Positions 5,573-62,244 of a DNA stretch of 64,000 nt are shown one piece after another (within the stretch, counting starts at the first letter, position 1; every line of letters starts with the position of its first letter). The notes under the pieces are model-generated. The model did not search any database, had not been told where the DNA came from, and was given only the letters and a program-made list of their open reading frames with translations. The stretch lies in the NCBI GenBank assembly GCA_025786725.1, contig JAHLTZ010000026.1, forward strand, positions 331,129 to 395,128, given 5' to 3'. The position numbers were made by a program, and so were the translations under genes. Origin of the DNA: Syncephalis fuscata S228. Taxonomy: Eukaryota; Fungi; Zoopagomycota.

Positions 5573-5756
5573 CTATAATAGTATAACGATTTTAGCTACA
5601 AACCAACAAACCATGATGTTAATAAATATATCGATCTGCACATTACTATAATTGCAACATACTACAGCGAACTAGAACTGGCATATCATCCACCATGGCT
5701 ATACTGGCTACAAAAGTCACGAGGATGATACAGATACCAACAATAAAGAGCTTCAT
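5573..5756 (-). pseudogene. Truncated or degenerate paralogue of the micro-exon secreted-peptide family
   Basis: 94-nt exon 5663-5756 encodes MKLFIVGICIILVTFVASIAMVDDMPVLVRC plus a phase-1 GTATGT donor. It is clearly homologous at DNA level to 38117-38209, including upstream sequence. No intact micro-exon chain follows. Confidence 0.6.
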
Positions 5757-10692: not shown

Positions 10693-11733
10693 ATGATATT
10701 TGGTATTCAAACCAATATTTACGCAACCACTGTTGTGCTACTTACAGCTCTAGCGGTCAGTAGCAATGCAGCCTCAATATATAGGCGTGACGATATCCAG
10801 CAAAGTAAGCTAGATATTCTATTTAATGTGCACTGGAGTTTACAGATTTTAGCAGGCAAATTCTTTGATCAGCCTATCAATACGCCCGACGCCTTTAAAC
10901 AAAGCACACTTACCATAAACAAGGTTCTAGAAAGTAAGCATGGCATATCTTATGCCGAGGGGACCTATCAAGACAAGCCTATCCGCATTGCTTGTGGAAA
11001 CGATAATGATAACGCTGACGATCATGAGCTTTTGGTGCTCAAGGTATGTTCTGCGAAAAATACATCAGCAGCAGCCAAAGTTTTAAACCTGGCAACAATA
11101 GGATCTTAGGAAAGCCACTGCCATTTCACGTGCATCGGAACCCGGCTACAATTATCTTGCCTACCCAATACACGACTTTAACATTAATGAAAATAAATGC
11201 TACATCACCTCAGCTCGATGCGATCACAAACTAAGCGATCAGAATGAAAAGAAACTAAGTCCATCAATTTTATCCAATACAAAGCTTCCTATGCTAGGAA
11301 CGCAATATTTGGAAGGTAGATATTGTTTGTACATTAATTTACAACACTAACTTATATTATCAGCACTTTATGCTTTACGTAGAATTGGATGGTCCTATGG
11401 CGATGCAGAGCCAGAGGGTAGGTTTTAATTATTAGTACATTATTAACCAGTAACTGATTTTATTAAATGCTAGACTTTTGTGTCAATGCCGATGAAAACG
11501 AAGGTTTGCAGCTTGTTGTTCGCAACTTTGAAAAGGCCGACTATTTAAAAATCTCGGGTACTCAAGGTGTTAGCGTCAAGCGCTTTGTTGAATTGGTGAA
11601 CTGGCACACGATCTATCTGATTATGCTGACCAACAGCTTTATCAATGACTGGCTTTTTTCCGTAGGAGGATTAATTAAATCCCGTTACATTGTAACTGAA
11701 ATTATGAATGAAAAGTACTATGGCCATATTTAA
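10693..11733 (+). CDS. Secreted protein-kinase-like protein (pseudokinase); 4 exons; C-terminus may extend to 11843 if there is a 1-bp indel
   Basis: Signal peptide TTVVLLTALAVSSNA followed by IYRR. First intron 11044-11101. ALYALRRIGWSYGDAEPEDFCVN and LVVRNFEKA map to the kinase catalytic-loop and DFG regions. Confidence 0.6.
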
Positions 11734-29763: not shown

Positions 29764-30399
29764 ATGAAGTCCTTTGGTGCTGTCGTACTCGTCCTCGTAC
29801 TGAGCGTTTTATCCAATGTAGCTGTAGTGACCGCCAAACCCATACCGTTTTATAAAGGTATTTGCAATAATGCATAACTAAATACTAGATCATCTATAAT
29901 ATTTGCTATTTGTTCTAATACATTGATACTGGTAGATAGTAGGTTATAAGGCTTGGCCGTTGATGTAAATTAACAATTGTATCTTTCAATGGTTCTACTC
30001 GACATGTCAATATAATAGGTAATAAGCACGGATATTTCACAAGCTATTTAGTACTAACAATACACTATTTGACACTTTTAAATAACTATAACAGTCAGTA
30101 GGTTTTTAAACATTCAAATAAACGACAATTAAATAGTAGCAATAGCCTGTAGGTGATAGTATACGACATATCATTGGCAATACTAACCGTATACTATCTA
30201 CATGATTTGATAGCCCGTATATGGCGCTTTTGATTGATCAGCAAATGGACTGACCGATCAAGATTAGCCATTATCGTGCTTGCTGGACAAGCACATATAT
30301 AAGGTTAGTTGCAATTGTAACAATAACTACGACTCATACTGTATTACACTTACTAACACTGCGTTACTATATCAACATTATAATATATTAGGCCATTAG
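29764..30399 (+). CDS. Small secreted peptide gene with 3-nt micro-exons (family member B); 3' end uncertain
   Basis: 94-nt exon 29764-29857 (MKSFGAVVLVLVLSVLSNVAVVTA|KPIPFYK, phase 1). It is followed by YAG-NNN-GT units at 29936, 30095, 30146 and 30214, plus a non-canonical unit at 30019. TACTAAC branch points at 30052, 30181 and 30351. Confidence 0.7.
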
Positions 30400-30990
30400 T
30401 CTCAGCAAAATATTCAAATTATTAATTATATGTTTTCGTTTTATTGTTTTCTATATCAGTAAACACCGGTAAAATTGGATTTGTTTATTAAAGACTTATA
30501 AAAACTACAACTACTTTTGTTCTATTTAAAATGATTATGATGCATTAGCTATAAGTAATAATTGTAACACATTTATTCAAGTAACAAATAGGAAATAAGT
30601 AATCCATTCAAGTTATATTGTATAAATGTCAATTAGTTATTTATAATGTGTTTTTCTGATATTTGCCATATATTTACAATTTAGATGTACATTATTTTGT
30701 TCATCTTAGAAAGTCACTGGGTGCATTTAGAAATAATAAACAATATAAAATTGCAGTCAATTAACTTTATATATTATTTGATATTCTAACTCGCCTCTCA
30801 TTATAACTTTAAAATAAATAGATTAATAATATATTTAATAACACTAATTACTATTTATTCTTCCTTTCTTTAACTTTACAATGAATATAGCATTATAATA
30901 CTGTAATGGGATCCCTTCAAACTATAGTTTAATAGCAAATCATTCTAATTATATTTTAATAACTATGTTCATTACATCTGTGTTTCCATT

Positions 30991-31558
30991 CTATCCTGTC
31001 CATAAATAGCGACAATCCTTATTAACGCACACGTAGTAGAGGGTCATTTTAGTATCTGCTCGACGAGAACTCGATTGAAAGTATACTGCTTCGGTAGATC
31101 CACAAAGTGGGCACGCACTCGTGGTACGTGGCTATACTTCGTCAATCACCATTCTATATTCTTGCTATCACTCTATCAATAACTTACCAGTGACGGATCG
31201 CTACTTAGATCCATATGTGCCATATTGCCCTCACTATCATGGACGATGATATATCATTAATTAATAGTCACTTGCCCATTCACTATATAGCTTACGATGG
31301 TGTTTGCTGCACTACATGTTCGTACACTCGATAATTATCGGCATGTTCACGATAGTCACAGTTGCGACACGCGTACATAAGACGCCTATGCGCGCGATCC
31401 TCCCAGGGGTAAAGCATATTCGAGCTGCAATTAAATATAGATTAACAAATACATACCAAAGTTTAAAGTTAAATAGCTACTTGCCAGATCTTGCAATACT
31501 TGAAGGAAGGCCGTGCCGTCGACTGGGCCTCATTGCTTTGATTAAAAAAGTTATCCAT
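30991..31558 (-). CDS. RPB9: RNA polymerase II subunit 9; 4 exons
   Basis: FKYCKICSNMLYPWED, ACRNCDY, DPSLPRT..CPLCG.EAVYFQS and MTLYYVC; first intron is GC-AG (31425-31484). Confidence 0.93.
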
Positions 31559-31737
31559 GACAGCGGCAAATGCAGTGTCGTTAGATGGAATAAGATAGAT
31601 AGGTAAGAGTGTGCAAGTTATAACAACAACAACACTTTGAAGTTATAGCCTTTTCGTTGATTCTTTCTCTTTACAACTCTACACTCACCACACACGCACA
31701 CGTCCTTTTCGTATAGGATTCATTGGATTATCTATCA

Positions 31738-32199
31738 ATGCCGGTTCCATTTGAGGCTCTATTGCCACTTGGCATTATTACTGGACTGATGGCCGCGACT
31801 GGATTTGGTTTGCGGGCAATAAAAAGGTCTGCCAACGAAGGTCATGTAAGTAGATAATATGCGCGCATATAAATATACATATATATATATGCTAGCTAAC
31901 AAGATCTAATCATCTCTAAATTGATTCTCTGTTAACAATACTAATATATATATATATATATATATTGTATATATTCTAATAAACTTTAGAAACCACGCTA
32001 TCACTTGGATACTTGGGATCATAGCATGATGCGTCGTGATAATCGTTTGACGGGCACTTTCCGTGGTCAACAGGCAAGCAATATTGTTTATTTAAATATA
32101 TTAATATTAACAGGCTAAACACAATAGAGCGATGAAAAGGCGCCAAGTGATTTTGCTACCAGCAGTATTTGGTACGCAGAAAAAGTACCAATGATTTAA
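31738..32199 (+). CDS. NADH:ubiquinone oxidoreductase MWFE/NDUFA1 subunit; 3 coding exons
   Basis: MPVPFEALLPLGII and KPRYHLDTWDHSMMRRDNRLTG; second coding intron is GC-AG (32074-32127). Confidence 0.88.
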
Positions 32200-32273
32200 T
32201 TGAGTTTATTATGTTTGGCGATATATATATATTCATATAAATATATAACACGGCAATACATTTAATAATGTGA

Positions 32274-32765
32274 TTATTTTCTATGTTGTTCTACAGTAGT
32301 TGGGTGGTCGTGGACCAATTCATTAAATCGATGACCTTGAATACGTAGCCAGTGATCGGCCAATTTACCCGAGTAGAATAGTTTACTAATATTGTATTTG
32401 TATTCATAGTATTGATAGTTATTAGTAATGGATATACAGCTAGAGATTACTTTAGATTACCGTGATGCATAAAGTTCATTGATTGAACTACCTAGTGCTT
32501 CACTTTGCTGTATATTCTCCAGTGCATTCGATAGTTGATTTTTAAGATGCTCTTTTTGAGTACGATCATCTTGATGAATAACATCTATATTGATGATTTA
32601 TAAGCAAAGTACAAGCTATAATTGATAGAATGCTACTTACCAGCTAATAGACTAGCCATTGGGTGGCATACTTTATGTTCAGTTATCGAGTTGGGAATAG
32701 TAACCGGTTTTAACAAAGGCATTTGTTGGATGGTATTTGCTAGTGTAGTTATAGTTGATTAACCG

Positions 32766-32796
<31 letters not shown>

Positions 32797-35434
32797 TAGA
32801 TAATGAATAGCTTACTATGTAATTGAGTCGATTGTTCTAAATGGGAAACAATCTGTCGTTGTTCCTTGGTCATTGCTTGTTGCATAATTACTAAAGTGAT
32901 GATATTAGCAACAATTAAATATAATGAATGACAATTTACCTTTAGCACTTAAATCACCAAGATGAATGGGTAGCGAGTCAAATGTCTAATAAATATTAGT
33001 TTATGTATTCTTTAATTAATGGTGTATATACCTGATAGGTTTTGAAATGAGTAGCATTGTAGAGTTCAAGTATAGCAGGATCTGTTTTTATACGGTTATT
33101 TAATAGTGACCCACTTAATAGATTCTTGTTTGATCGACTATACAGCTAACCGTTAATACCAACACTAATGCTTAACTAAATGTATGAATACTAACTCTGA
33201 TGATATCGAGAGAACTTGGCCTCGAGTCACGTCAACATTATTAAATAGTGCACACTCCTGTGCTATACACGTTGTTAATTGCCGTTGATGGTTAGCAAGT
33301 ACTTTGGAAAGTGGTGCAGTTTGATTTGAATAAATATTATTCGTCTTTAATGCGTTCAATTTAATGAGTCGTCGATATTAATATTACTATCGACTAACCT
33401 GTAAGCTCAATTGAAGAATCTTTTCTCGAAGCGTAGCAGTAGCTTTTGTAATTGGCCTATCCATAGGCGACGTTGAATCTAATCATCAATACATTAGCTA
33501 TATTAATAGTTTATTACACTATTATTACTCTCTTACTAGTGTGTCATCTAGTGCATCTAATGCTTCATTCTCTAAATTATTTGTGTGTTCCCAAGTGATT
33601 ATCCACTGTAGAATGCTGATTTAAATATTTATCTTGTATAAATTATTCGCTTTCTCTAAACCACTAATATGTGCATTACATAAGCTATTTTTCTATTAAA
33701 GATATACATATACATATATGTATTAAATTCGTATTAATGATTGAATGAATTACTACATAATTGTTTGAGCTCGCATTTCATCCAGTTCACAATTTGATAT
33801 CGTGTCTTTTAAAGTCGATTCTGCTTGTAAGATATCATCTAATATTGTTTTACTTGTTGCCTGTAATTGTTTAATATCTATAAACAATTGAACGTGTGCT
33901 TGTAAACAATCCTAATTATAAATATATTAAATACATAATAGCATTAATACTATTAAATGAATACCTCAATTGTTGTTAACAGTGGTTTATATCCTTCTTG
34001 TTCCAATTCTTTTCTATAGTATAGCTAGTTAGCAAATAAATGGCTTGTATATCTTAAATGACTACCTCATAGTTTGAGCATCTTTATTAAAATCAACACT
34101 TGCTATCCTATCCTTTACTTGTTGACTAGACATTTTTAATGAAAGAGCTACCGCTTTAAGCAGGACTATTGGATTTGACGAGTTATATATCTCCTACATG
34201 TTAATAGCATATCAGTAGTAGAATGACACCGTATCCATCTACTTACATTGATCCTTGTTACCATTGTCTCTTGTTGTTTCTGTTCAATTGCTGTGTTTCT
34301 ATTAAAGTTTAGATATTTGATCTGTGTGCACTTAATACAATATACTTACGTAGTTAAATGTTGCTTAAATGTTGGTTTCACACTATCAACCATAAAAGAC
34401 AATTGTTTCTATATCGCGTGTGATTAAGTAGATCTATAGGCTATTCACAACTATTACCTGAGTCTGTACAATATCCATATCCGATACTCGATATGTAGTA
34501 TTTTCTCTACATTAACCAATTAGCATTTAATATTGCAGTTTACTAACAACTTACTGATTTGCCGATATTCGTGCCATTGCTTCCATTGTAGTACTATAAG
34601 TTTTCATTTCTTCAATTGTAGATTGAATACGTGCACGATAGCTACGTTTTAAATGAATTCTATGTTGTGCTTTTCTAATTCTCTCTTCCAACTCATTAAC
34701 CGTATTCTCTACCCATTACTGCCATTAGATTCGTGTATTCAACATGGCTATATATACATATATACCTTTCTCACTAATCTGCTTCACCAATAGTTGACAT
34801 TGTTGTTGTTGTATTTCAGTACACTGTACAATAGCTGTCATCCTATCATTTTGAGCTTTTCTTGTTTCCTCTAACCGTGTCCGTTCAGTAGATTGATTGG
34901 GTGGCAATTGGTGCTTTTCATAAGCACTAAATATTTATATATCATTAGACATTTGTATATTATCGTTATAATAGCTTACTATTGAATAGCCCGTCTTACT
35001 TTTGCTACATGTCTAATAATAAAAGTAATAATAATAAATTTAGTATATTAATTAAACTGAATTATTATTATTAATATATCATTGCTTACGTGCGAGCAAA
35101 TAAATGTTGTTTAAGATGTTGTAATATCGGTTGTATAGGCCCTCGGCAAATACTAAAATACGTTAGATATACGCTATTTATTACTTTTAGCCACCTACGT
35201 TTCAAGTGTCTGCGGCGTAAATTGTTTATTATCATCGATACCCTGCTTATGCTGTGTTTGTATTAGTGTTATGGTGGATCGATAACCCAGTTCTTGAGTT
35301 AACCACGTATATGTCTGTTCAGACAGTTGCTGTGGTGAGATAGCTGAACTTTCACTATTTCTTGCCTGTACAGGCGTTGTTCGGCGTGTGGCCGTTGTTT
35401 TTATCGTTCTGGTCGGTCGTTTAGACGATGCCAT
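32274..35434 (-). CDS. Augmin/HAUS complex subunit 5-like coiled-coil protein; many exons
   Basis: N-terminal TWLTQELGY...ICRGPIQPILQHLKQH...RHVAKVRRAI matches the HAUS5 N-terminal pattern; coiled-coil exons follow. Confidence 0.6.
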
Positions 35435-35696
35435 ATTACTGTAGCGTGTAAGAGTAATCGTGACCAATAATAAGAAAATACTTTTCTATCTACCAAGAAA
35501 GCGAAACGCTACTTTATTTCTCTCTTTCTCTCTCCCCTTTACTCTTTTCTCCAATATCATATTTCATTTATTATTTAGTAACGTGCATCTAGTGTGTAGT
35601 TATCATCATTTATCTATTGTCTTTGTTTCATCGCAGTCTCGTTCAAGTGTATAGTTTATTGTTATTAGGGTAGTCGGATTACTATAACGTCGACGA

Positions 35697-36485
35697 ATGG
35701 CGGCTTCATCAAATGGTGGTTTGGCTGGTCGAGGCGCCGATTCAAGAACACCATCGCCGCCACCACGACTGGTTAAAAGCGCCAAAAAGACTGGAAAGAG
35801 TCCGAGTCCATTTACTGGATTGGGCAAGGCTCAAGCATCTCGACTATCGCTTACGTCTGAAGAAATGGAAGATATTCGAGAGGCATTTGAGATTTTCGAT
35901 TCAGATAAAGATGGATTGTTGAATGAGGTCGAGTTACGTGTATGTGATCCTACACTAAATTGCCTATCTACCAACTGGTTACTAATGACGAGAATAGGCG
36001 GCATTTAGAGCATTGGGTCTACCGCTTCGTCCCTCAGAGTTTGTCCGCATACTGTCCAAGGCGGGTAGACGGTTTGAGAAATCACCGGAAAGCCTAATAG
36101 GCTATAAGGACTTTCAACATTATGGTAGGTCAATATAGGCAATTATATATATATATATATATATACGCATATCATTAACTTTAAAAGTATAGCTACACAT
36201 TTTATGCTTCGCAAGTCTTCAGAACATTTAGTCCAAGATGCTTATCGTCTATTTGATATGGATGGCAAGGGTGGCATTACTGTGGATGATCTACAACGAG
36301 TGGCGTTGGAACTTGGACAAGCAGTTGATGATGTGGAGTTACATCGTATGATTCAGGAATTCGATAAAGATGGTGACGGCAAAGGTAAATTTAAACAATT
36401 GGTTTAATGACATATTAGTAATTGTTGTTTATTAGTGACGGAAATGGAATTTATGCATATACTACAGCCTAGAACAAGTGAATAG
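35697..36485 (+). CDS. Centrin/caltractin-like EF-hand protein; 4 exons
   Basis: IREAFEIFDSDKDG and AYRLFDMDGKGGITVDDLQRVALELG...MIQEFDKDGDG. Confidence 0.85.
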
Positions 36486-37192
36486 TTATTAAGGCTTTGA
36501 TTTATTTTATTGTATAATATATATTGCAGTTTAATACAATAGTACTATATATATGATTATCATCAGTTGTTAACACTAAAAAGTGGACACTTAATTTGTT
36601 GATGTACAAGGTAGCGAGAAAATAATAGACCTTGATAAACTACTTGCTATTACACTAAATATACTGCTTGTGTGTTTATTGAAATTGATATCGCGGTGTT
36701 ATACCTTACAAAAGCTATTTTGTGGATAAACAATGATATATTGTATCGGAACTGGATAATAATAATAATAATTTGTATTTGTTTAGTTTATTAACAAGGC
36801 AGTGGAAGTATTGCTTGTATGTTACCAAAGATTTTCTGTTATAGGATCGTTATTCTGGATATAATATATTTTTTTAAAATATTAGCATTACATCGTAGCA
36901 TTTAATGCTGTCGCGCTATATTAGTAGACTAATAATAATACCAGTGGCTTATTTAGTATTATTACTACGAGTTTACATAGTTAAATAAACAACTGAATGC
37001 AGGCTTGTTGGTAATATAATAATGCATTGATTAAAAGCGGATAAATTGGAGTATTGGATGGAACTCGATATGAGAATGGACTAGAGATTGCCGTTAAGTG
37101 ATCTTGACTTTTGCTAAATTTAAATACTTAAAGTATATTAAACTAACAGTTCAGTCCTATCACCAATACAGATATCTTGGAAGCAACGCTTA

Positions 37193-38209
37193 TTCTGTGT
37201 TCATAAACATATACAATCATGCAGTATAATTAGCATATGAAATATAGATATATGATGTCACTTACAAGCTATTAATATTAGATTTTAATATAAGTATTAA
37301 ATATTATGTAATGGGCGTATTATTAACTAATATCTAATGTTACTTACGAGCTATCATTATGCTTAAATTGGTAATGCACGCAGTATAAATGATGGAATCA
37401 GCACATAACCAATTATATACGATATTACTTATGAGCTATTAGTGTTAAATTTTCAAAAACATATATGTATAAAGCCTGTTTAGTGAATAGTTAATTGATA
37501 CAATTATTACTTATGACCTATAAAGTACATAGAAGTAATTAATATGTAAATACTCTATATGCATTGTTACCTACGTCCTATTGATACAATTTATTAAACA
37601 CACACACAATGTATAATATGTAATTGGCATGTAGTTAATTGATATACGATAAAACTTACGAGCTATTCGTGTTGGTTATTAAAGATACAGTATATAATAT
37701 CTAATTAATACATCTTTAATCAAAACACAAAATTACTTACGGGCCATGAACGCTATTTTAGTTATACAAATAGTATTTAATTAGCTAAATAACTAATATT
37801 TTAGTTTTATTTTACCTCCTATTAATGGAAATTCAACATATTAGCACCATCAATACAATATTTTATTTATATTTAATGTTAAGCCTACCTTCATTTAATG
37901 GATTTGATTTATTTATTATACATTAACAAATAGCCATTAATCAACACATCAAAAACATATATTTTTATTACTTACCAACTAATATAATGCATTTAAAGCG
38001 CACAGTAAATGTTGGGATAACTATTTATAATTGCGACTTACTGGCTAATATTATGATTAGTTAGTTATAATCTAGTACGTATGCCAATATGCACATTTGT
38101 TATGATTATAACATACCATGACGGGCTAGAACTGGATTAGCATCCACCATGGCTGTACTGACTACAAGGGCTACGAGAATGTGCAGGTAACGGCAATAGA
38201 AAGCCTCAT
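37193..38209 (-). CDS. Small secreted peptide gene with a chain of ~11 micro-exons (family member A); 1-bp deletion in exon 1 as assembled
   Basis: Signal exon 38117-38209, then TAG-NNN-GTA units every ~60-90 nt. The spliced product ends in a TAA formed across the last junction. Confidence 0.75.
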
Positions 38210-38861
38210 GGTGTCTTGATTTGTTAAATCAAACAAGTAAAATGGCCGATATATTGTAGTAATGATGCTACTAGTTATTTGTGTATATTTTGTGGTCTAT
38301 TTAAATCTATAATTGTGCTGAGATGTCGGCAGAATGTTTTATGTCTAATATGCCATTGAAATATAACGTGAACCAATAAAACACGTATAAATAGTAACAT
38401 AAAGCTTGTGTATTAATATATTTTTGCTTTGCTTTATGTAGTCTAGTTCTTTGTTTTCTAAAATATTCAATAACAAGTGTTTTCATGTACTTAAACAAAG
38501 TAGGTTGTACTGAAAAACCTAATGCATTGTGTTTTTTGTGAATGCATATCATATGCGTAAACTATTTGTAGTTTATCAAGCCATAGGGTTATTCTAGACA
38601 GAAATCGTTATCATAAAATAAGTATAAAGCAAAATGCAGTGCACACAGGTATTATGTGTTTATATCATTTATTGGAAAGTAATCGTAGTATGCTATCATG
38701 GCTATTCAAACAAAAGCAAGAATATAATTATATAAAATTGAAGTCTTCTATAATATTAAATATAAAGCAATATAACTGTTGATATTTATAGCATAGCAAT
38801 GATCAGCTAATTGCCATTGCTACAATAGTATTAACGATAGCAATGGTTACCATTTAGCCGG

Positions 38862-40588
38862 TTAAATAATTCGTTGATTTTGTGACTGTTTACATTTGTC
38901 TTCACTTGCCCAATATTCCCGTACTTTATCCTTCTCTTTTTTCCGCTGATTCATATTTACTTGCTTAGAACTATAATTCTTTTATAATCGTTAATTATTG
39001 TTGATTAAAATTATTCTATTCTTACTTGTAAACTAAATATGTCCGACTGATTATTGGTTTGATTCGGTACATGCGGAACAAATATTCTTGGCGTTGACGC
39101 TAGCTTATCTAGCACTGACGTTGATGAAAGCTGTCCTTTCTTTTTAGATGACAATTTAGTAAAAAACTCTTCATTTGTTTTTTGACATAATTCTTTTGTT
39201 AAAGCTTTGTTTTGTTTTGACGAAAGTGCCTGTTTGCTTTTTTTCTTAAATAACAATTCAGTAAAAAACTCTTCATTTGTTTTTTGACATAATTTTTTGT
39301 TAGAGCTTTGTTTTGTTCTGGCGAGACCGCCTGTTTGCCTTTTCGTTCAACTTTGGTGTTTACGTTATCATCATCTAATATAACTGTAATAGATGTAGTT
39401 TTTCCCTTTGACTTATTTAAATATGAGTCCAGTTTTGATCTATGTTTGTATTTTCTTTGATAGATGCATTTGGCATTTCCAAGCAAGCTGTATCATTAGT
39501 GGATGTATTGGCACTATTATCAGTATCAGTAATACAAGTGTTTGTAGTGGTAGCATTATTAGTTGTCGTAGAAGTAACAATACTAGAGTGAGTATTGCCA
39601 TTTTCATTGCTGATGATTTTAGCCATAGCAACATCAGTGACAAGATCTGAAGTTGTACAAGTCGGTGTATTTTCACAATCGTTGGAGATAATTGTGTCTA
39701 CTTGACAACTGGCGCTAAAGATTCTGTAGTTATTTCTGTATTTAAATCCACAATCTTACTCCAATCAACCTTTTGCATCTTATTGGATAATGTTTCTACT
39801 GAATCGAGCACGTCATCTGAATGGCTTTTCATCTATTTAGCTGTCAGATACCATTATTACTATCGTTGTTACAGCTCGCTATTTACCTCGTCCGCAACTG
39901 CTTTGCACATATCTATCATAAAAAATAAATGACCTGGAACTAATTAAGTAGCATTGCTTACCTGGATGATTGCCATTAGCTTTTTTTCTAGCAGGTTGGC
40001 TCTTTTATGCTCCCATGTTATAGTAGCTATAAAAGTTTTTAGTATAGCTTCATGGAAAAATAGACGTTGTTCCTCTGGCCCATTAAGCAACGAGTATGCA
40101 TTGCGACAATCAAACTTCCAATCCAGAGTTTTGCCTCCAAACTTTCTAGAGACTTTTAAACTGATCTAAATGTATAATTGGATCAATATCTTGTCGATGA
40201 ATTATATACAGCACTAAACACTTGCTTTATCATCTAATTCTTTATTAGTAAATACCACGCCTTTCTCCATATTGAACATTTCAGCTAAAAAACACACTAG
40301 AATTTGTCGTTGATGAGTGTCACATGGCACCAAGTCATATTTGACATTCTAAATAACATTAATAAACCATTCACAACATGGATACTTTACAAATACCTTG
40401 GCACGATTTGTTAAATCTTCTTTTTCGAGAATATCGACCCAACAATCATATAAATTAGTTAACATAAAGAGATAGCCATCAGGTAGTATAATAAACTTAT
40501 AAAACAACCGTTGCTTTATACTAGGTTTTTGGGCTGGTAATGATGTCCATTCAACATCGTTCAATCTAGACAATAAATCTTTACGCAT
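38862..40588 (-). CDS. XLF/Cernunnos (Nej1)-like NHEJ factor with low-complexity C-terminus; apparent indels
   Basis: N-terminal VEWTSL...FYKF...YLFMLTNLYDCWVDILEKEDL..RAK and LDWKFDC fit the XLF head domain; a coiled coil follows. Confidence 0.55.
39155..39345. repeat. Two-copy ~102-bp tandem duplication inside the XLF-like tail
   Basis: AGTAAAAAACTCTTCATTTGTTTTTTGACATAATT recurs at 39158 and 39260 (KQA...QNKALTKELCQKTNEEFFT twice). Confidence 0.85.
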
Positions 40589-40707
40589 TTTAAATTCTTT
40601 TGCTTAATAACAATAAAATAGAAAAATGGCCGTTTATATCTGTTTTATTCTTTTGTTTTTATTGTTAAACAAAATAGGCAACGCGTTTATTTACGATTCC
40701 AAACACC

Positions 40708-42333
40708 ATGCACGCTTATTATAGACCAATTCTACCGGTGTTAACACGACGATTCTACACGTCTGGCCAGCCTCTAATGTCTGGCGTGTCTACAATACGC
40801 CAAATATTAATAAAGCAACATGCAGGCCAGCCTACTTGTATACACGGCTGGATTCGCTCAGTGCGAAAGCAAAAGAATATGGCGTTTGTCGATGTCAATG
40901 ACGGCAGTTGCATGCGTGGTATTCAAGTCATCGTCGATCAGCCTATTGACGGGTAAGTTATTCGGATATCTGCTATTGACGTCCAGCTCTGACATATTCA
41001 GTAAAGACTGGCAGCTGGTTGCGCGGTGCAGATCGACGGACATTTAGTTGATAGTCCAGGTCATGAACAGTCGCTTGAACTGCATGCTCGAAATATTAAA
41101 GTAGTTGGAGAATGTGATGCAGAGGTATGTAAACACATAGGTATTCAGTTGGTTTACTGATTTGTAGAATAGAAATATCCATTACAAAAGAAAAGACATA
41201 CATTAGAGTTTTTACGAGAATGGCCTCATTTAAGATCACGTACACATACAATGGGAGCAGTATTACGTATAAGAAACCAGGCAATTCATAGATTGCATCA
41301 ATTCTTTCAGGTCATTAAATTAATGTTATATAGTGTTTAAACTAATAGATGGTTTAGAATAATGATTTCTTACAAATCAATACACCAATCTTGACAGCAC
41401 ATGACTGTGAAGGTGGTGGCGAAGTATTTCGTGTAAGCACAAATACACCAGCTGTCCATGGTAGCAATAAGGTAGAGGATGGCTTAGATAGTAGTAATAA
41501 CGAGTTTTTGGTCGACCGGTCTATCTTACGGTATCGGGCCAGCTTCATTTGGAGGCTATAGCTATGGCTGCATCTCGAGTATACACACTGAGTCCTACAT
41601 TTCGTGCGGAGCCTTCACAAACATCCCGACATTTGGCGGAATTCTGGATGTTAGAGGCCGAAATGTCATTTATTACTGAGCTTGATCAATTAATGGATCT
41701 GTGTGAATCATGTATTGTCAATACAACACGACAGCTACGCACTACACTACCAGATGAGATAAATCTATTTAAGCGATGGGTTGATCCAGAGCTAGAAAAG
41801 CGGCTTGCTTTGCTGGCTGCAGATCAGCAACAGTCCTATGCTCGTATGACATATACCGAGGCTATTGAGGTGTTGCAGAAAGCGCCAGTCAGTTTTAAAT
41901 TTGCGCCTACATGGGGTGCGCCACTTCAAAGTGAACATGAGCAATATTTAGCTGATCGTCACTGTCAGCGTCCGGTATTTGTCACACACTATCCTGCTTC
42001 GATAAAACCATTCTACATGTTGGTTGATCCTGCATCGGCCTCTGAATCAGATAAATCAACAGTGGCATGTATGGATTTATTAGTGCCAGGTGTAGGCGAG
42101 TTGGTGGGAGGAAGTCTTCGAGAGAGCAATGAAGCGACATTGAGAACACGTATGGAAAAGGCGGGCGTGGATCCACAAGCTCATGCTTGGTATCTTGATC
42201 TTCGAAGATTTGGTGGTGTACCTCATGGTGGCTTTGGTCTTGGACTAGAACGTTATTTGCGGGCCGTGACGGGTATAGCAAGTATCAAGGATCTAATACC
42301 ATGCCACGATCCATTGGCCAATGTCCCTGCTAG
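40708..42333 (+). CDS. SLM5: Mitochondrial asparaginyl-tRNA synthetase; apparent 1-bp indels near 41508 and 42302
   Basis: [62 protein letters not shown] and [11 protein letters not shown]. Confidence 0.92.
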
Positions 42334-42337
42334 CTGT

Positions 42338-43574
42338 CTAATAGCTATCATTAAGCAAGTGTTTTATGATTCCGAGTGCGCTGTAGCGATATGTATCACT
42401 GCCTAATAAAATATAATGATTAAGATGATGATAGAGTTCATATAGCTTTACTCGGCGATCTCGCTGTTTAGTAGGTGGAAATGAGCGGTTGTATTCTTCA
42501 TAAAAATCTAATAATAATAATGTATATATATAAATATAAATAGTACTATACAATTATGTGCAATATTAATACCATGCGATAACCCGCCAACATTCTATTA
42601 TGCCAAACTCGGCCTCATAGTGTCCCTGATTATTTGATTAATAGTTTAATTATTAAAGTTTGTAATTTGCTTAAAAATAAAGAGCAGGATCATAAATACT
42701 GCTTGACCTGTATCGGCTCGTATACCCCAATTACCGGCCCCTAATGAATATTTAGTAATAATAAATATCATGTTGAAATACTTGCATAAATTCCATGAAT
42801 TAGACTTGGCTTAATCAATGTATTGTCCCCAATAATCTGCGGTACTATTTCTAATAATTCTTCACCTAATTGAAACAGCTCTTGATCATGAGAAAGAGTC
42901 TTAAACAACGGCAATAACCGCTGATTTTGCCAAAAGCTAGTCCAATTGTCGATACATGGATCGTTTGATTGTGGTGTTGCTCCACAATAAGTAGTGCATA
43001 GAAATCCGTAATAACACGGTTTATCATTACTTTGACAGTCATCATTCCAAGAAGATCCAATAGCTTTGGCAATTAGTGGATCGTCTCTATTCACTGAACT
43101 TATTTTATCGCATTTATGCAATTGAGCCAAATGTTGGGCTAAATTACGCTGATGGCTTTATTACAGTAATGATGATTTGTCAATTTATTTACTAGTTACC
43201 TGTGCTGCAGCATCCTTTTTGCCAGACATTTGAACATATTCAGTGACAAGAAAGGCACCTTTATCACTACTATCTAACTCTCCATATAGTATTGGCTGCG
43301 GTGCAAATCCTTCGACGACCTTATTGATCAAGCTTAAAGATAAATACTCGGCTTGAAACATCTGCAAGGCTTTATCTCCATAATGAACCTAATATATTGT
43401 TAATAAATATTGTTAATAAACATGGCTACCTACTTTGACAAAAAAAGGTCCCTGATCTGTTTGATAGCAACTAGTAGCGCTGGTATCGCCACCGCTTACT
43501 ACGCTTGCCTTATATACAGTTGCGCAGTGTTTGTTTTGTAATAACGCTTTTACAATACACGATATTGGTTTCAT
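42338..43574 (-). CDS. Fructosamine/ketosamine-3-kinase family protein; multi-exon
   Basis: VSGGD...PFFVK, MFQAEYLSL, LAQLH, YGF, PSLIHG, GNWG, DPA, GHYEAEFG and LYELYHHLNH. Confidence 0.88.
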
Positions 43575-43681
43575 GGCTATTAAAAGAAAAAGTGATTAAT
43601 AAATGATGACGTGGACACTGAGGTGTGACAATATTTATTGATATAGCCTGCTAATCTATCGCTTTATTTATTTTAAAGTGT

Positions 43682-43797
43682 ATAGTGTTGCTTAATTATT
43701 TAATGATAATCTGCTGCATGATAATGAATATATATATAGCCATTATAAATATAATCATTATCATGAAGCAGATTATCATTAAACAATTGCACACTAT
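43682..43797. repeat. Long inverted repeat (foldback/MITE-like hairpin)
   Basis: TTTAATGATAATCTGCTGCATGATAATGA pairs with TCATTATCATGAAGCAGATTATCATTAAA (1 mismatch); outer arms ATAGTGT/ACACTAT. Confidence 0.8.
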
Positions 43798-44060
43798 CAA
43801 TAACGGTAATTTTCATTGCCATCTATATTCACTATAAATATTGATTTGATTGCTGATATTATACATTTTTTGGTTATCTATTTAAGTTCATATTATTTTA
43901 TTTTTTGGCCAATTAAGAAATAAAGCTTTTAAAATACAACCTTACTATGCATGAAATTAACTTCATGACTACTAGAGATAAGGCAATTATGTATGATGAC
44001 ATGGACATTACCTAGGACTGATATTGCTTTATTTATTAGTATATTTTACAAGTTATTAAT

Positions 44061-44441
44061 CTAACAAGGCTGCGTCGTTCTACCACATTTGCGGCATTCT
44101 CGATGACGCAGTAAAACCATACTGAGTAGACCGAACGGAAACATAAAAATAGTAAGTAAAAGACATGGAAATAGGTATGTTCTGACCCAGTAGTGAGGCC
44201 GACCGTCAACACACAATAGCTCATTGGGTCGTGAATAATCCACGGGCCCATAAGTCATTGGTTCTGATGTACTGCGAGCCATTATAGAATTAGATTTGGG
44301 TTGATAGATTGACATCGCTGATATGGGCGATGTCATATAAGAAGATGATCTTGGTGGCAGTGTTGGCGAATACTGTAATGTAGCCGATTTATATCGGTAG
44401 ACTGTCTTGTCTGATTGAGAATACAGCTGAGGATATTCCAT
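44061..44441 (-). CDS. BRI3-like Cys-rich small membrane protein
   Basis: Pro/Ser/Tyr-rich N-terminus, then C..G..H, a hydrophobic LLTIFMFPFGLL segment and RECRKCG. Confidence 0.7.
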   Translation of the reverse strand: MEYPQLYSQSDKTVYRYKSATLQYSPTLPPRSSSYMTSPISAMSIYQPKSNSIMARSTSEPMTYGPVDYSRPNELLCVDGRPHYWVRTYLFPCLLLTIFMFPFGLLSMVLLRHRECRKCGRTTQPC

Positions 44442-45508
44442 GATAATGATAAAATAGTAAACGGAAAAAGAAGGGGTATTATGCAAGTCAATACCCAAAA
44501 AACAGTTAGCGTATATATTTATACAATTGGTAAGAGCGGTTCAAACAAAATAATAAACGCATGCGGTGGCGCTACATGTTTGAAAAATTCGATTAAAACG
44601 GCAATGCCAAGAATTGCCAAGATATGGTATGAATCATCAAATGTTCAGTATTGGTGATCACACATTTGCCCAATTATTGATATCTTTGCAACAGCTGTGC
44701 TTCAGATTACATATTTACACACGGTTAGCAATGTATATAGCATTAAACAATGTATTCAAGTGATAAAGCATAAATAATAAACCTTGGGCAATCGATAAAT
44801 ACTGATCACATATATTTTGATTAATTAGTATAATACACTGCTTTCTATACAGCATCTGATGGTTACTACTATCTACCACAAAACACAGTAATACAATACA
44901 AACAATAACTTATTAAAAGACAGCGTATATATAATAGTATATTAATAGACTACTCTTATATTTAGATTTTAATGATTTATTTTTTAAAACAACATTACAA
45001 AAATACAATTATGTGCTATGTACTTGTTCGCCTGTTGAACCGGTATTGCCAAGAACATGCATAACAAATAGTTAAAATACCTGTAAGTAAATAACAACTA
45101 TAGTTGCATCATTAATCATCGGCAGTAAGTTCCGTCTATTTAGTCGTTCATTTCATTTAACGATCAAGTAATCAGCATTATAGTTCGTGTAACGTTCTAT
45201 GAAACAATCGTAATCCAGCTTGATACTCATTAACTAGCACGTTGGAATTAATATTAAATAACCCATCATTGACAAACCATGCTCCAATATCAAATATGAT
45301 AATTATAACAATATTTTAATTTACTTCTGTCATCAGTAGTATATATCTTGTATACACGCATACACAGTTTTTTGTTTATTATGTCATTGTGGTTTACACA
45401 CCCGAAGATGATCGCAAATAAATCATAATGGCCAGAAAACGAAGTAAGTTTTATAGGTGCATCGTATAATTGTATATATATACACATACACACGTAAACA
45501 ATCCTTCT

Positions 45509-46130
45509 TTAACCACGGCCGCGTCCTCGTCCACGGCTTCGACCGCCGCGGGGTCCGCCGCGACCACGTCCACGTCCGCGTCCACCGCTTCTATAGCAAT
45601 ATATTAGCCAGTGTTTATTCACTAGCCATTCGACTTACCCTCTTTCTTCTTCTTTGATTTTGCCTTGGGCGAATCGTCAACCAGTAGCGTATCTAGCGGC
45701 AAACTATCCGGCAGAATAAAGTACCGAATATTATTACCGCGAATACTTAGTGAGTCGAGATTGGCCGGGTCGCGATTCTTCATCGTCATCTTGACCATCT
45801 TTAAATGTGTATTCATACTCATATCCACACCTATCAATTATTACATATATCAATATGTCAATATATGCCTATTGTGTATCATCCAACTTAAACATACCAG
45901 TGATAGTACCGTGAACAACCGTGCCATTCTTAAGCTCAATGGTCACGACTTCGTTGCTCAGCTTCATCAAAAATCTACATAGAACATCTATTATTATTTG
46001 ATAGGAATTCATATAGATCGTCGCTTCTAGTAGCTTTCTAACTTGTTCAAACGCGTCGCAACACGTTCTACAGGCTAATTTCTCGCTGATGATGAGGCGA
46101 TGACGCGTCTACTTACCTGACTAGCTTCAT
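45509..46130 (-). CDS. SMD1: Small nuclear ribonucleoprotein Sm D1; 4 exons
   Basis: [54 protein letters not shown] and a GR-repeat tail. Confidence 0.97.
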
Positions 46131-54952: not shown

Positions 54953-56167
54953 ATGAGCGCCATCGGTACCGGTGTAAGTGCGATGTACAAGTCTACGCCA
55001 TATCTATAACTTACATTCTATCTGGCAGTACGATCTGTCGGCAAGTACCTATTCGCCAGACGGCCGCATCTTTCAGATCGAATATGCTACCAAGGCCGTC
55101 GACAATAGCGGGTAAGGAGTATAGGTCAAGGCAATGCATTAGCCAACTAACCATCAATAACTAGCACGGCTATTGGTCTCCGTTGTAAGGATGGTGTTGT
55201 TTTAGCGGTCGAGAAGCTTGTTCAGTCAAAATTGATGGTGCCTGGATCTAATCGCCGTATTCTTGCTGTGGACCGACATACCGGCATGGTAAGTGTAGAT
55301 GGGTGGGCTAGTTAGTAATATGGCTTATAATAAATATAATGGATGATAGGCAGTTGCCGGTCTATTGGCCGATGGACGTCATGTAGTTAAAAGAGCGCGC
55401 GATGAAGCTGAAAGCTACCGTGACATTTATCGCGTACCTATTCCTGGCAAGGTTAGTTATCATTGTCTAATTGATTGATAAAATACAATTTGTGTTAACT
55501 GTCATGCCATATCATGTAGATGTTGACCGACCGTATTGGTCAGTATGTTTCCATGCACACACTATACTCGAGTGTACGTCCATTTGGCAGTGCTCTATTG
55601 GTGGGCGCAGTAGATACCCATGGGCCACAGCTATTCCTTGTGGAGCCATCAGGTGTTTACTGGGTAAGTGCGATGATATTAAGACTAATATTTAAGCGAG
55701 CGCAGTATTAATCGGCCATTTAACTGTTCAGGGCTACGCCGGATGTGCCATTGGCAAAGGAAAACAAGTGGCAAAAGCAGAAATTGAAAAACTAAAACTT
55801 GATGAATTAACAGTCGAGCAAGGTGTAAAGGAAGCTGCTCGCATGTAAGTATTTATTTAATAATAAAAATGTAATCATAGCTGGTGTTAATTAATTTGTT
55901 ATTTAGTATTTATGCGGCACATGATGAAAATAAAGACCGCGAGTTTCAGTTGGAAATGAGTTGGATTCCCGTGTCAAATGGCGGTCGTCATCAGCCAGTG
56001 CCATCAGAAATTCAAGAAGCAGCTGAACAATATGCCAAGGCAAGTAGAAAAAGCAATATATACATAGAATAAAAATGCGCTGTTATGTTATACTGATGAC
56101 TGAACTGTTGATATAGGATGCATTACTAGGCGACGATATGGACGACGATGACGACGATGAGGTCTAA
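54953..56167 (+). CDS. PRE10: 20S proteasome subunit alpha 7; multi-exon
   Basis: [46 protein letters not shown] and [16 protein letters not shown]; last intron is GC-AG. Confidence 0.97.
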
Positions 56168-58283
56168 TCTTGAATGCACAGCCAGGCTACTCGTATACAA
56201 TTGTTGTTTTGTCTGTTAACAATGTGCTTCTTACACTCTTATAAACTGAACAAAATATCATTCATGAAGCTAGAGAGAGAAAGAGAGGATATGTTAAGAG
56301 ACTGAACTATGTATTGTTTTTATTGTGTTTTGATATGAATCATTTGAGTAGTCAAAGAAAGTGTAGAAATATTAGAGACAACAAAATGATTTACCTAATG
56401 AAATATAAATGTATAGAATGCATGAACAATATAGCTATAATATATGTGACTGAATAAGCACAATGAATGAACGTGTAAAAATACAACTAGCAATAAATAA
56501 TCGGTTTTTTATTAATAATGCATAATTAATGTATAATAGAACGAATATACAGCATGTTGCGAATAATAGAAAGTAATACTGTGCTGGTAGTTTAGTAAGT
56601 AAATGGGTCAAGATTGATAGCTAAGGCAAATAAGTATCCAACAGGCAATGATTTGAACAGAACGTTGCTACTATATTATAAAGTGAGACTCGAAGAATGA
56701 AAAGCAAAGGGAAGGAGAGAAATAAATAAGGCGAAGTTAAAAAATAAGGACACTATGAATTAGAGGATAATGGATAAAGCAGCTAACAATAAGCAAAAAT
56801 AGCTTCAAGTTGCTATATAACAATAATATTTGTATAATAACAGCAACTGGCCAAATATAATAATGCTACAGCAAAGGGAATTGAGTAGCATGTCAATAAT
56901 ACTGCCATTATTTTTGTTAAATAAAATAAAATAGATTTATGAGTATAGTAACGTTATATATTTAGTTTTAATGACGCAACATCACTATTATGACTATCAA
57001 GTGTGTACAAATACAGAAATCTACATGTATTTTATAATTACAGATTTACATACGACTATCTATACCTAATGTAATACGGCATCTACAAAGCCATATTAAT
57101 TAATTTCAATAATTAATGAATAGCTATTTTACTAAAGAATAGTAGATGAATTATAGATTCGAAGCTACTGTACTTTGACTCCCTATCTTTAAACTGAAAG
57201 TTAAAAAGATTCATAACTCAAGTAAGCCGTTGATCAATTTTAATACTGAAAAGTGATTTGTTGAAGTAATGCTACATCAACTCCGATTGAATCAATCAGT
57301 CATAGTTAATTTGCACTATTTTCAATATTAAAATAGATATTAAATAGTAGTTTCATGTCGCTTACAATAAAATATAATAAATAAATGTTAATCCATATCA
57401 TTGCTACTGTAAAGTATTCAAAGCATTATAATTTGCTTATTTAATAGCACTCACCATTTAGTTCCATGTTTAGTAGAACAACAATGTGTAGTTCAATCAA
57501 GTAAAGAATGTCAATTTCGATCTTTTGACACTGAATCACCTTAGTCTATGTATTAATTATTAGATTGGAGTTATTCTATTTTAACTTTCATATCTTTTCT
57601 TTATCCATTTCACTTCCCTTTTCTTACCACTTTTAAATACAATTAAACACTCATTTATCAGTGTGACATGTATAATATTACATCCAACATTAATTAATTC
57701 ATGTTTAATTATTAATACAATGACGTAATTACTTAGTTATCTTGATTATTGCTTTAACATATATATATATTGTCATTTATTTAGTCAAATTGGCTATAGG
57801 GAAATAGCTGTTTTACTAAAGAATAAATGACAATAATAAGATTTCATTAAATTAAAAGATTAAAAGCCATTCACCCCGTATGTGACTGGTATAGCTTTTG
57901 CATTTCTTTGCAACAATCTCCTACGCTTGTCCCTCCATAATTTGTCATTGTTTGTATGGGCTAGTATATTGGTGCAACACCTTTGGTGCCTAAAAAGGTT
58001 CCTTCGACTTTTGAATTCGCCTATTACTATTTTGATACAAAAACATGTGGTCACTGTCTAAAATAAGTCAATCTGTTACTTGGAAATTGTACGCTTTTAG
58101 TAGATGAATTAAAGATTTAAAGAAATTTACCGCGCACAGCACCTCCTCTAAATTATTTCAATCTCTCCTAATTGCTCGTAGCTTTAATTTTTTTAACGAA
58201 AACTCTAATAATTATATTCGCCATCTAATTTCTATTATATCTATTGCATAATTTACCATTTGCCACTTGCGCTAATTAATCTA

Positions 58284-61094: not shown

Positions 61095-62244
61095 CGACAA
61101 TTAACTTTAGTTTTATTTTAATGTAAAATCCGTATTATACCGCGCCTATCTGGACGTCATTCTATGCTGACTTTTATAAGCTATTATAATTATGGTGGGC
61201 GAACGCGGAAAATATCTACAAATGGATGAAAAAGCTATCGCGATCACTTACGATGTGAATAATATTTTAATTTTAAGTTTAATGGGATGTTTATGTTTTT
61301 GTTTTATGTAAAAATATAATATATATTGTTTGACAACCATTACATTGCGATTTCGTATTGCAATATAATTACCATGCTGGAGTACATCATATACTTTGCG
61401 TTTTAATTTAGCAATCGGAATGTTGTTTAGTATTTTAATTTTACACTTGTTAATTTGTCAAAAAATAATCAACATAAATGAATTTAACAAGATCATTTTA
61501 ATAAAAAAGGACAATAATTTACTGTGTTACCATATTTAGTAGTATAAATTAATTAAAATTTTGGAGCTAATGTACTTTAAATAAACTTTTCTTCATATTA
61601 TTGTCGTTGCTTGCCATTTATATAAAATATAACTAGTAGTTGAATACTTTCTATTGAGCTATAAATTCTTATTAAATATGATGCTGAATGGGAGTAGTAT
61701 CAAGTATTGAATTATTAAATTAAAAATATCTTATCGTCAGTATATAATAAAATAGTATATATATATATCAGCATCATCATCACCCTTGCATATTCATATA
61801 TATATACTATTTTATTATATACTTGTATCGTATTAATAAAAAGCTGTTTATTTATTACTGCGTGTATTTATCATACATTTTAATTTATTCCATTCAATGT
61901 ACTCTACTTACAGTCATATACACATTATAGATGTACCATTATTATATTACTACTGGTATAATTACTAGTATTATTGCTGCTATTAGTTATGCTGTTTGTA
62001 GGTTGTAATTTGGTTTGTTTAATCGTATACACATTATAATTGCTAATATACATAGATATTTACCAAACTCGATATTTTTATTGACAAGGAAATCTACACA
62101 CTCTGCGTCAACACAGTAACGTGTATAGGATGCATTGTCGTATAAACTGCAAATAAAATGTAAAATGTAAAGTGGATGGGCAGCTATTGTAATGTTGTGA
62201 AGAAGAGAGGATTGGTAAAGATGTCAACAATGTTGTATTAGTAT

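Follow-up and report, generated by a model that had tools for sequence, protein, structure and literature searches.

RESULTS

Anatomy of the locus

This study concerns a 64,000-nt stretch of the genome of the fungus Syncephalis fuscata S228 (GenBank assembly GCA_025786725.1, contig JAHLTZ010000026.1, positions 331,129 to 395,128 of the forward strand), hereafter the window, and a putative micro-exon gene within it, gene 2. Gene 2 spans window positions 29764-30480 on the + strand (contig positions 360892-361608), in the gap between the MAPK and RPB9 genes of S. fuscata, and has no annotated product. A first-pass annotation, made from the sequence of the window, had listed an exon 1, five triplets flanked by splice signals, tandem acceptors, a 36-nt exon, three TACTAAC branch points and a last acceptor, and we found all of these where it had placed them.

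Introns were judged against 141 reference introns, derived from the annotated genes of two S. fuscata loci (L001 and L003) and one S. plumigaleata locus (L002). For each gene, the GT-AG set that reproduced the annotated product length was taken, a model-based and approximate procedure. Locus L001 is 100% identical to window positions 30708-46000 over 15,293 nt. Position weight matrix (PWM) totals are given below with their percentile among the reference introns. The features of gene 2, in window coordinates, are:

29764..29857, + strand: exon 1, with ATG at 29764; 94 nt, or 31 codons plus G; phase 1; donor GTATTT.
29858..29935, + strand: intron 1, 78 nt, GTATTT...TAG; weak donor; PWM total 13.5 (21st percentile).
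29936..29938, + strand: 3-nt exon ATA, tag-ATA-gtaggt.
29939..30018, + strand: intron 2, 80 nt, GTAGGT...TAG; PWM total 19.8 (65th percentile), a score reached by 0.7% of decoys.
30019..30021, + strand: disputed triplet GTA, tag-GTA-ataagc; as a 3-nt exon it would have the donor ATAAGC, which is not GT.
30019..30094 (30022..30094 if GTA is counted as an exon), + strand: intron 3, 76 nt, ending CAG, with TACTAAC at 30052.
30095..30097, + strand: 3-nt exon TCA, cag-TCA-gtaggt.
30098..30145, + strand: intron 4, 48 nt, GTAGGT...TAG; PWM total 13.2 (19th percentile); branch score 0.9, no CTRAY branch motif.
30136, 30139 and 30145, + strand: ends of the tandem acceptor AGs at the end of intron 4.
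30146..30148, + strand: 3-nt exon CCT, tag-CCT-gtaggt; 9 or 12 nt via the upstream acceptors, every variant in frame.
30149..30213, + strand: intron 5, 65 nt, GTAGGT...TAG, with TACTAAC at 30181; PWM total 21.4 (79th percentile).
30214..30216, + strand: 3-nt exon CCC, tag-CCC-gtatat.
30217..30267, + strand: intron 6, 51 nt, GTATAT...TAG, branch motif CTGAC; PWM total 15.3 (28th percentile).
30268..30303, + strand: 36-nt symmetric exon encoding P-IIVLAGQAHI, with stop TAA at 30300-30302; G+C content 0.42.
30304..30391, + strand: intron 7, 88 nt, GTTAGT...TAG, with TACTAAC at 30351; PWM total 19.8 (65th percentile).
30392..30480, + strand: last exon, either 3' untranslated region or a short alternative ending (..RH* or ..GH*); the 3' end is approximate.

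Exon 1 encodes 24 signal-peptide-like residues, then KPIPFYK and one further base. Its sequence features include K at position 2, a hydrophobic core of 11-13 residues with a mean Kyte-Doolittle value of 3.38, and a predicted cut after V-T-A at -3 to -1. The internal exons, of 3, (0 or 3), 3, 3, 3 and 36 nt, are all phase 1-1 and thus symmetric. The gene is compact, with seven introns in 630 nt; its 3-nt exons supply 12-15 of 141 coding nucleotides (about 10%, or roughly one-third together with the 36-nt exon), while exon 1 supplies 67%.

Spliced through GT-AG introns only, the locus reads ...KPIPFYK-D-I-T-S-PIIVLAGQAHI, 46 aa before signal-peptide cleavage. All of the inclusion and skipping variants tried were in frame and gave pre-peptides of 33-49 aa; when exon 1 was joined directly past the array, the products were in frame as well (33 or 42 aa). 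Intron 7 lies 3' of the stop, or would be used upon skipping of the 36-nt exon. The tandem acceptors proposed earlier as a source of further variants are present and the resulting variants are in frame. Acceptors 30136 and 30139 would produce introns of 39 and 42 nt, both below 45 nt (the 5th percentile of inferred real introns), and the 39-nt variant is also under the 40-nt floor used when the reference introns were derived.

The site at 30019 reads better as a zero-length exon, TAG/GTAATA, than as a 3-nt exon, because the GTAATA site scores normally and similar abutting AG/GT junctions occur in two related genes, gene 1 (at 37888) and a gene of S. plumigaleata (L002 position 3107, cag/gtaagt), both described below. 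An intron at 30019-30094 with donor GTAATA, a donor used by 6 of the 141 inferred introns, has a PWM total of 17.3 (45th percentile); an intron at 30022-30094 with donor ATAAGC totals 11.1 and has a negative donor score. From the spliced reading given in the first-pass annotation, KPIPFYK-D-S-I-T-S, the D, I, T and S residues and their triplets stand, and the serine from 30019, which would require an AT donor, does not.

Splice signals, composition and expectation by chance

The reference introns had a median length of 56 nt, a 5th-95th percentile range of 45-92 nt and a maximum of 144 nt. All seven gene 2 introns (48-88 nt) are within the 45-92 nt range, and their PWM scores span the 19th to 79th percentile of real introns. 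Decoy GT..AG pairs had a median score of 7.2 and a 95th percentile of 15.6, and five of the seven gene 2 introns score like good real introns. Reference donors were GTAAGT in 33% of cases and GTAGGT in 3%, and acceptors were TAG in 75%. By comparison, GTAGGT is the donor of three of the seven gene 2 introns, and TACTAAC, found in 2 of 141 reference introns (where CTAAT and TTAAT dominate), is likewise present in three of seven. The signals of these micro-exon introns are thus unusually strong. Inside 420 nt at gene 2 lie 3 of the 10 TACTAAC and 3 of the 15 GTAGGT words on the + strand of the window. The 20-nt flanks of these exact signals are only 25-55% identical, and whole-intron similarity among the gene 2 introns is barely above that of shuffled sequence. 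Exact, rare splice signals amid unrelated flanks look like the outcome of selection on the signals.

Base composition follows the proposed exons, with G+C contents of 0.46 in exon 1 and 0.42 in the 36-nt exon, compared with 0.30 in the gene 2 introns and 0.21-0.27 in the flanks. A matching contrast is seen in the MAPK gene next to gene 2 (0.45 in exons and 0.30 in introns).

The motif [CT]AG-NNN-GTA[AG]GT occurred 8 times per strand in the 64-kb window, compared with an expected 0.66 per 64 kb in 1,000 third-order Markov simulations, and three or more such motifs inside 700 nt arose in one of the 1,000 simulations. For comparison, L004-L008, which comprise other Zoopagales loci and a Syncephalis-like metagenome contig (about 71 kb, both strands), contained scattered single motifs only, with no such gene. 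Because a permissive chaining rule let simulated sequence reach chains of 3-6 exons, we used strict donors and a modulo-3 control instead. In this strict scan (window, L002, L004, L005 and L006, both strands, about 134 kb), only gene 1 and the S. plumigaleata gene yielded chains of at least three, and in every such chain the exon lengths were multiples of three; neither the 1-mod-3 nor the 2-mod-3 control yielded any.

Two other kinds of element were considered at gene 2 and rejected. TRF, a repeat search and blastn found no tandem or dispersed repeat covering the locus, which speaks against a transposon or introner, and Rfam and tRNA scans of the window, run for a noncoding RNA, were empty.

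Related loci in Syncephalis

Three further loci share parts of this build; two of them, gene 1 and the S. plumigaleata gene, lie where the NCBI records have no gene call:

37150..38209, - strand: gene 1, the first micro-exon gene of the first-pass annotation; exon 1 of 93 nt, frameshifted; exons of 3, 3, 0, 3, 12, 3, 3, 3 and 3 nt.
5663..5756, - strand: gene 3; exon 1 of 94 nt, phase 1, intact and paralogous to that of gene 1; no micro-exon array follows.
L002:2200-3340 (JAIXMF010000009.1), - strand: S. plumigaleata gene, unannotated; ten exons of 12, 3, 6, 12, 9, 3, 6, 3, 6 and 9 nt plus one 0-nt junction.

The micro-exons of gene 1 are spaced 66-90 nt apart, with two extra triplets that have ATAAGT donors. 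Its units of intron plus triplet repeat in tandem, in degenerate form, about every 82 nt and are 60-74% identical. Exon 1 of gene 1 has a stop at codon 13, and there is a 1-nt gap relative to gene 3 within the signal-peptide region. Genes 1 and 3 show 78% mean identity over the promoter, exon 1 and the start of intron 1 (blastn E = 3e-26), and gene 3 could be a remnant with two exons.

Of the four loci, the S. plumigaleata gene shows the micro-exon build most clearly. Its first exon (97 nt, phase 1) begins like a signal peptide, its micro-exons all carry strong donors, and a terminal exon follows. The micro-exons total 69 nt, or 31% of the coding sequence, and only the frame dictated by exon 1 is open through them; the model encodes 73 aa with two cysteines near the C terminus. 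This gene occupies the same MAPK-RPB9 gap as gene 2. The gaps of the two species align at their edges only, and therefore orthology of gene 2 and the S. plumigaleata gene cannot be claimed.

Across the four loci, first exons are 93-97 nt long, phase 1 where intact, and have A/[KNR]-P-[IVL]-[PL] at the predicted cleavage site. Gene 2 matches this pattern (94 nt, phase 1, A/K-P-I-P), and its exon 1 donor is GTATTT, compared with GTATGT in the other three. The first-pass annotation had described gene 2 as a second, sequence-divergent copy of the architecture of gene 1, and blastn and BLASTP comparisons between the two are indeed blank. Its further statement that the architecture is conserved holds insofar as the build recurs in gene 1, gene 3 (exon 1) and the S. 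plumigaleata gene; for gene 2 the likeness lies in anatomy and position, and homology is not demonstrable. Its reading of the divergence as the mark of a fast-evolving family does not follow, as damage is plain to see in two of the three S. fuscata copies and fast decay explains the divergence as well as fast adaptive evolution would. Taken together, anatomy, composition and recurrence make it very likely that the gene-like structure at gene 2 is real.

Single-codon exon arrays in metagenomes

Metagenomes were scanned for a GTAAGT, a TAG-NNN-GTAAGT and a TAG-NNN-GTARGT at intron-like spacing, a pattern matched by at least 120 contigs before filtering. Many matches were CRISPR arrays or TAA-rich low-complexity repeats and were filtered out; one such false positive of the splice-motif scan, L016 (Ga0209668_10004689), is a 45-repeat CRISPR array in which the 37-nt repeat contains TAGGGAGTAAGT. 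Among the matches listed, to which all counts in this section refer, filtering left at least 45 nonredundant arrays on at least 34 contigs, with 6-58 consecutive tag-NNN-gt units of varied triplets each. Array introns are 60-80 nt long (median, 68 nt), and neighboring introns are about 66% identical. Arrays were found, among other contigs, on L019, L025, L040, L062, L063/L096, L079, L086, L095, L111, L119, L121 and L125. They can sit inside larger genes, following ordinary exons in L086 and a transmembrane exon in L125.

Stop triplets made up 2 of the 642 triplets in the 45 arrays, compared with 37.1 ± 4.4 expected from column shuffles (minimum of 23 in 2,000 shuffles). The other two phases contained 20 and 96 stops (48 arrays with 676 triplets, counted before duplicate contigs were removed). 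Judged by this avoidance of stops, the array triplets are evidently translated as single codons, and therefore the introns between them must be spliced exactly. A Pfam search with the open reading frames (ORFs) flanking two arrays gave no match. From the sample series and the style of the introns, our guess is that the hosts are soil and root-associated fungi. Neither arrays of 3-nt exons nor consecutive micro-exons were described in the literature searched, where the cases were all isolated ones, human RPS24 and MAP4K5 among them.

Searches for the product and its function

Exon 1 of gene 2, gene 3 and the S. plumigaleata gene belonged to no Pfam family, and a DNA pattern back-translated from exon 1 of gene 2 was absent from the metagenomes searched. 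The first-pass annotation had suggested an effector, pheromone or antimicrobial peptide, and none of these roles drew support from the sequence. The predicted gene 2 products, which end in ..QAHI, ..RH or ..GH, lack the marks of peptide pheromones that we looked for (CAAX box, Kex2 repeats and KR/RR sites), and zygomycete-grade fungi signal sexually by trisporoids, not peptides. Regarding cysteine-rich effectors or defensin-like peptides, no gene 2 variant has a cysteine after the signal peptide. Syncephalis species are haustorial parasites of Mucorales and Mortierella, and a small secreted peptide at the parasite-host interface is a plausible guess and no more.

Other features of the window

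Some features of the window lie outside the micro-exon loci:

62245-63969, - strand: HSP90 exon, with Thamnocephalis the closest named relative (89%); cut by the contig end.
41501-42403, + strand: mitochondrial asparaginyl-tRNA synthetase (AsnRS) exon, 100% identical to a Syncephalis fuscata protein.
10693-10804, + strand: ATG-led, signal-peptide-like first exon of 112 nt, phase 1, donor GTAAGC, starting a 138-aa ORF; this may be an ordinary secreted-protein gene.

Window positions 57163-64000, which hold HSP90 and a neighboring 822-aa gene, recur inverted at 99.4% identity at the end of contig JAHLTZ010000046.1 (L003), and positions 55556-57770 recur in direct orientation at the end of the same contig. 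Possible causes of this recurrence are duplication of a contig end, inversion of one haplotype relative to the other, and an artifact of assembly. The HSP90 gene at L003:3314-5437 is intronless (707 aa in 2,124 nt), and neighboring genes have 5-10 short introns each. A homolog search with a centrin exon of the window gave one short metagenomic match.

DISCUSSION

A candidate secreted-peptide gene of micro-exon build

We see an even chance that gene 2 is a working, unannotated, Syncephalis-specific small secreted-peptide gene of micro-exon build. In such a gene, exon 1 would supply a cleavable signal peptide plus seven residues and break off after the first base of a codon, the next four or perhaps five exons would each be exactly 3 nt long and pass on phase 1, and the 36-nt exon would supply the C terminus and the stop. 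The introns of about 50-90 nt would probably be recognized across the intron. A 3-nt exon is too small for the spliceosome footprints of both flanking splice complexes at once, and sequential removal is the only plausible route for exons of 0-3 nt. Each intron would come out in turn, and each removal would attach a triplet to a larger exon, as in recursive splicing. Since each internal exon is a multiple of three, any subset could be included or skipped in frame, and the predicted products would measure 33-49 aa before cleavage and about 10-25 aa when mature. The build may have originated through tandem duplication of "intron plus codon" units, a process that would have left traces in gene 1 and would be extreme in the metagenomic arrays. 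We infer the transcription, splicing and secretion of gene 2, and any role it may have at the parasite-host interface, from the DNA.

Several observations weigh against this proposal. Gene 2 falls short of a strict chain of three, having three perfect GTAGGT exons, one exon with a weak donor and one with a non-GT donor. Its weak sites are the exon 1 donor GTATTT, the 48-nt intron 4 with no branch motif, the GTATAT donor of CCC and the 30019 triplet without GT, and its stop comes before a further intron. The open frame says little because 3-nt exons do not constrain the reading frame. Exon 1, the only part long enough to search, matched no protein among 1.84 billion representatives, and the ORF that reads through from exon 1 is not on record as a called protein. 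Searches by blastn and BLASTP found no significant similarity of gene 2 to gene 1, gene 3 or the S. plumigaleata gene, with only genes 1 and 3 matching each other, and its membership in the Syncephalis group thus rests on anatomy and position; moreover, the S. plumigaleata gene lies on the opposite strand. Both sister copies in S. fuscata are damaged, gene 1 by a frameshift and two ATAAGT donors and gene 3 by truncation.

The last of these points also bears on a second explanation, that gene 2 is the decaying relic of a working gene of the S. plumigaleata type, in which the signals and the open exon 1 have simply not yet been mutated away. We hold a relic to be unlikely, though it deserves serious weighing. 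The frameshift and GT-to-AT donors of gene 1 and the lost array of gene 3 show the kind of damage it predicts, and gene 2 itself has an ATAAGC donor, a weak GTATTT where the other loci have GTATGT, a branchless intron and a weak donor at CCC. Its micro-exons are also all at the 3-nt minimum, while gene 1 keeps one of 12 nt and those of S. plumigaleata measure 3-12 nt, and there is no annotated or transcript-derived product. The position of the stop fits decay too, as it comes two codons short of where a symmetric exon ends, with another intron still to follow, although this early stop costs only two residues. Against a relic, exon 1 is open throughout, its signal-peptide pattern is intact and its G+C content is exon-like, and most of the introns (5/7) score as good real ones. 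Further, three exact GTAGGT and three exact TACTAAC signals persist amid near-random flanks, which neutral decay would not preserve.

It is also conceivable, if quite improbable, that the gene is real and the triplets are not part of its message. The array would then be removed as one or a few larger introns, perhaps via AG/GT ratchet sites, exon 1 would join position 30268 or 30392, and the tiny exons would be by-products or splicing aids. Such complete skipping is in frame and gives sensible products of 33 or 42 aa, zero-length junctions exist at 30018/30019, at 37888 in gene 1 and at L002 3107, and the inability of a 3-nt exon to hold both splice complexes together fits as well. However, a single 410-nt intron would be nearly three times as long as the longest of the 141 inferred introns (144 nt). 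Micro-exons of 3-12 nt that are divisible by three and open only in the correct frame, as in S. plumigaleata, would be pointless if untranslated, and the stop avoidance of the metagenomic single-codon arrays indicates that such triplets are translated elsewhere. Finally, a chance or repeat artifact, in which an AT-rich intergenic stretch happens to hold splice-like words, is hardly credible: TAG and GTA-rich words are common in DNA of 30% G+C and one 3-nt "exon" motif is expected by chance in roughly every 64 kb, yet clustering of this kind appeared in 1 of 1,000 simulations, TACTAAC, GTAGGT, an ATG-led signal-peptide exon and exon-like G+C content coincide on one strand, no tandem or dispersed repeat covers the locus, and the control loci were empty.

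Comparison with known systems

The closest parallel is with the micro-exon genes (MEGs) of schistosomes, in which about 80% of the coding region consists of symmetric exons of 6-36 bp, the products are secreted and variation arises by exon skipping (PMC5825161). As read from its sequence, gene 2 shares with them a signal-peptide first exon, short symmetric exons, a small secreted lineage-specific product and a parasitic bearer. It differs in that its exons are mostly 3 nt and account for about 10% of the coding sequence (31% in the S. plumigaleata gene), where MEG micro-exons make up most of it, and in its host, a zoopagalean fungus with introns of about 50-90 nt. MEG transcripts and proteins are documented, whereas gene 2 is known as DNA, a further point against a working gene. 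Searches of Pfam and representative proteins with exon 1 found no sequence relation to a described MEG family. By analogy, gene 2 would work like a MEG and not be a member of the MEGs.

Other systems match single parts of the build. Isolated 3-nt exons in human RPS24 and MAP4K5 show that the spliceosome can include a three-base exon (PMC12207440, PMC8632122); these are single exons in long, exon-defined genes, in contrast to runs of four to ten in a tiny secreted-peptide gene. In filamentous fungi, functional microexons were previously undescribed according to a 2024 paper, which reported one in Xlr2 of Trichoderma (PMC11121469). This microexon is single and regulatory and lies in a transcription-factor gene. 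Recursive splicing shares with these genes an acceptor that abuts a donor (TAG/GTAATA at 30018/30019 and cag/gtaagt at L002 3107). In animals, classical ratchet points break up introns that are tens of kilobases long, whereas the Syncephalis pieces are about 80 nt (the two at 30018/30019 total 156 nt) and most junctions keep 3 nt.

The metagenomic arrays resemble gene 2 in their tag-NNN-gtaagt units and 60-80-nt introns. They are phase 0, have similar neighboring introns, as young tandem repeats do, and belong to larger genes, while gene 2 is phase 1, with unrelated introns in a tiny gene. Duplication of a segment carrying splice signals is known to create a new intron (PMC4974935). The repeats of about 82 nt in gene 1 look like repeated rounds of such duplication, where known cases are single events, and in gene 2 the repeat signal would have been erased.

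A broader reading is possible, although we lean against it: genes in many soil eukaryotes, probably fungi, may be assembled codon by codon through tandem amplification of "intron plus 3-nt exon" units, an architecture that would be undescribed and missed by current gene predictors. The Syncephalis genes would then be an old, diverged offshoot, a fungal counterpart of the schistosome MEGs that varies a secreted peptide by exon skipping.

If transcripts confirm the working micro-exon gene, runs of codon-sized exons would be on record for a fungal gene family for the first time, and the accepted lower limit of exon size would be pushed down, with serial use becoming routine where only rare, isolated cases are recognized now. 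The gene would also offer a compact system for how an intron-defining spliceosome handles exons of 0-3 nt, and its likeness to the MEGs of schistosomes, parasites as well, would make a notable case of convergence. A general route of protein growth, the duplication of an intron together with one codon, is suggested by the metagenomic arrays. With four Syncephalis loci that have no protein product on record, secretome and effector catalogues of early-diverging and parasitic fungi may be missing a class of small peptides.

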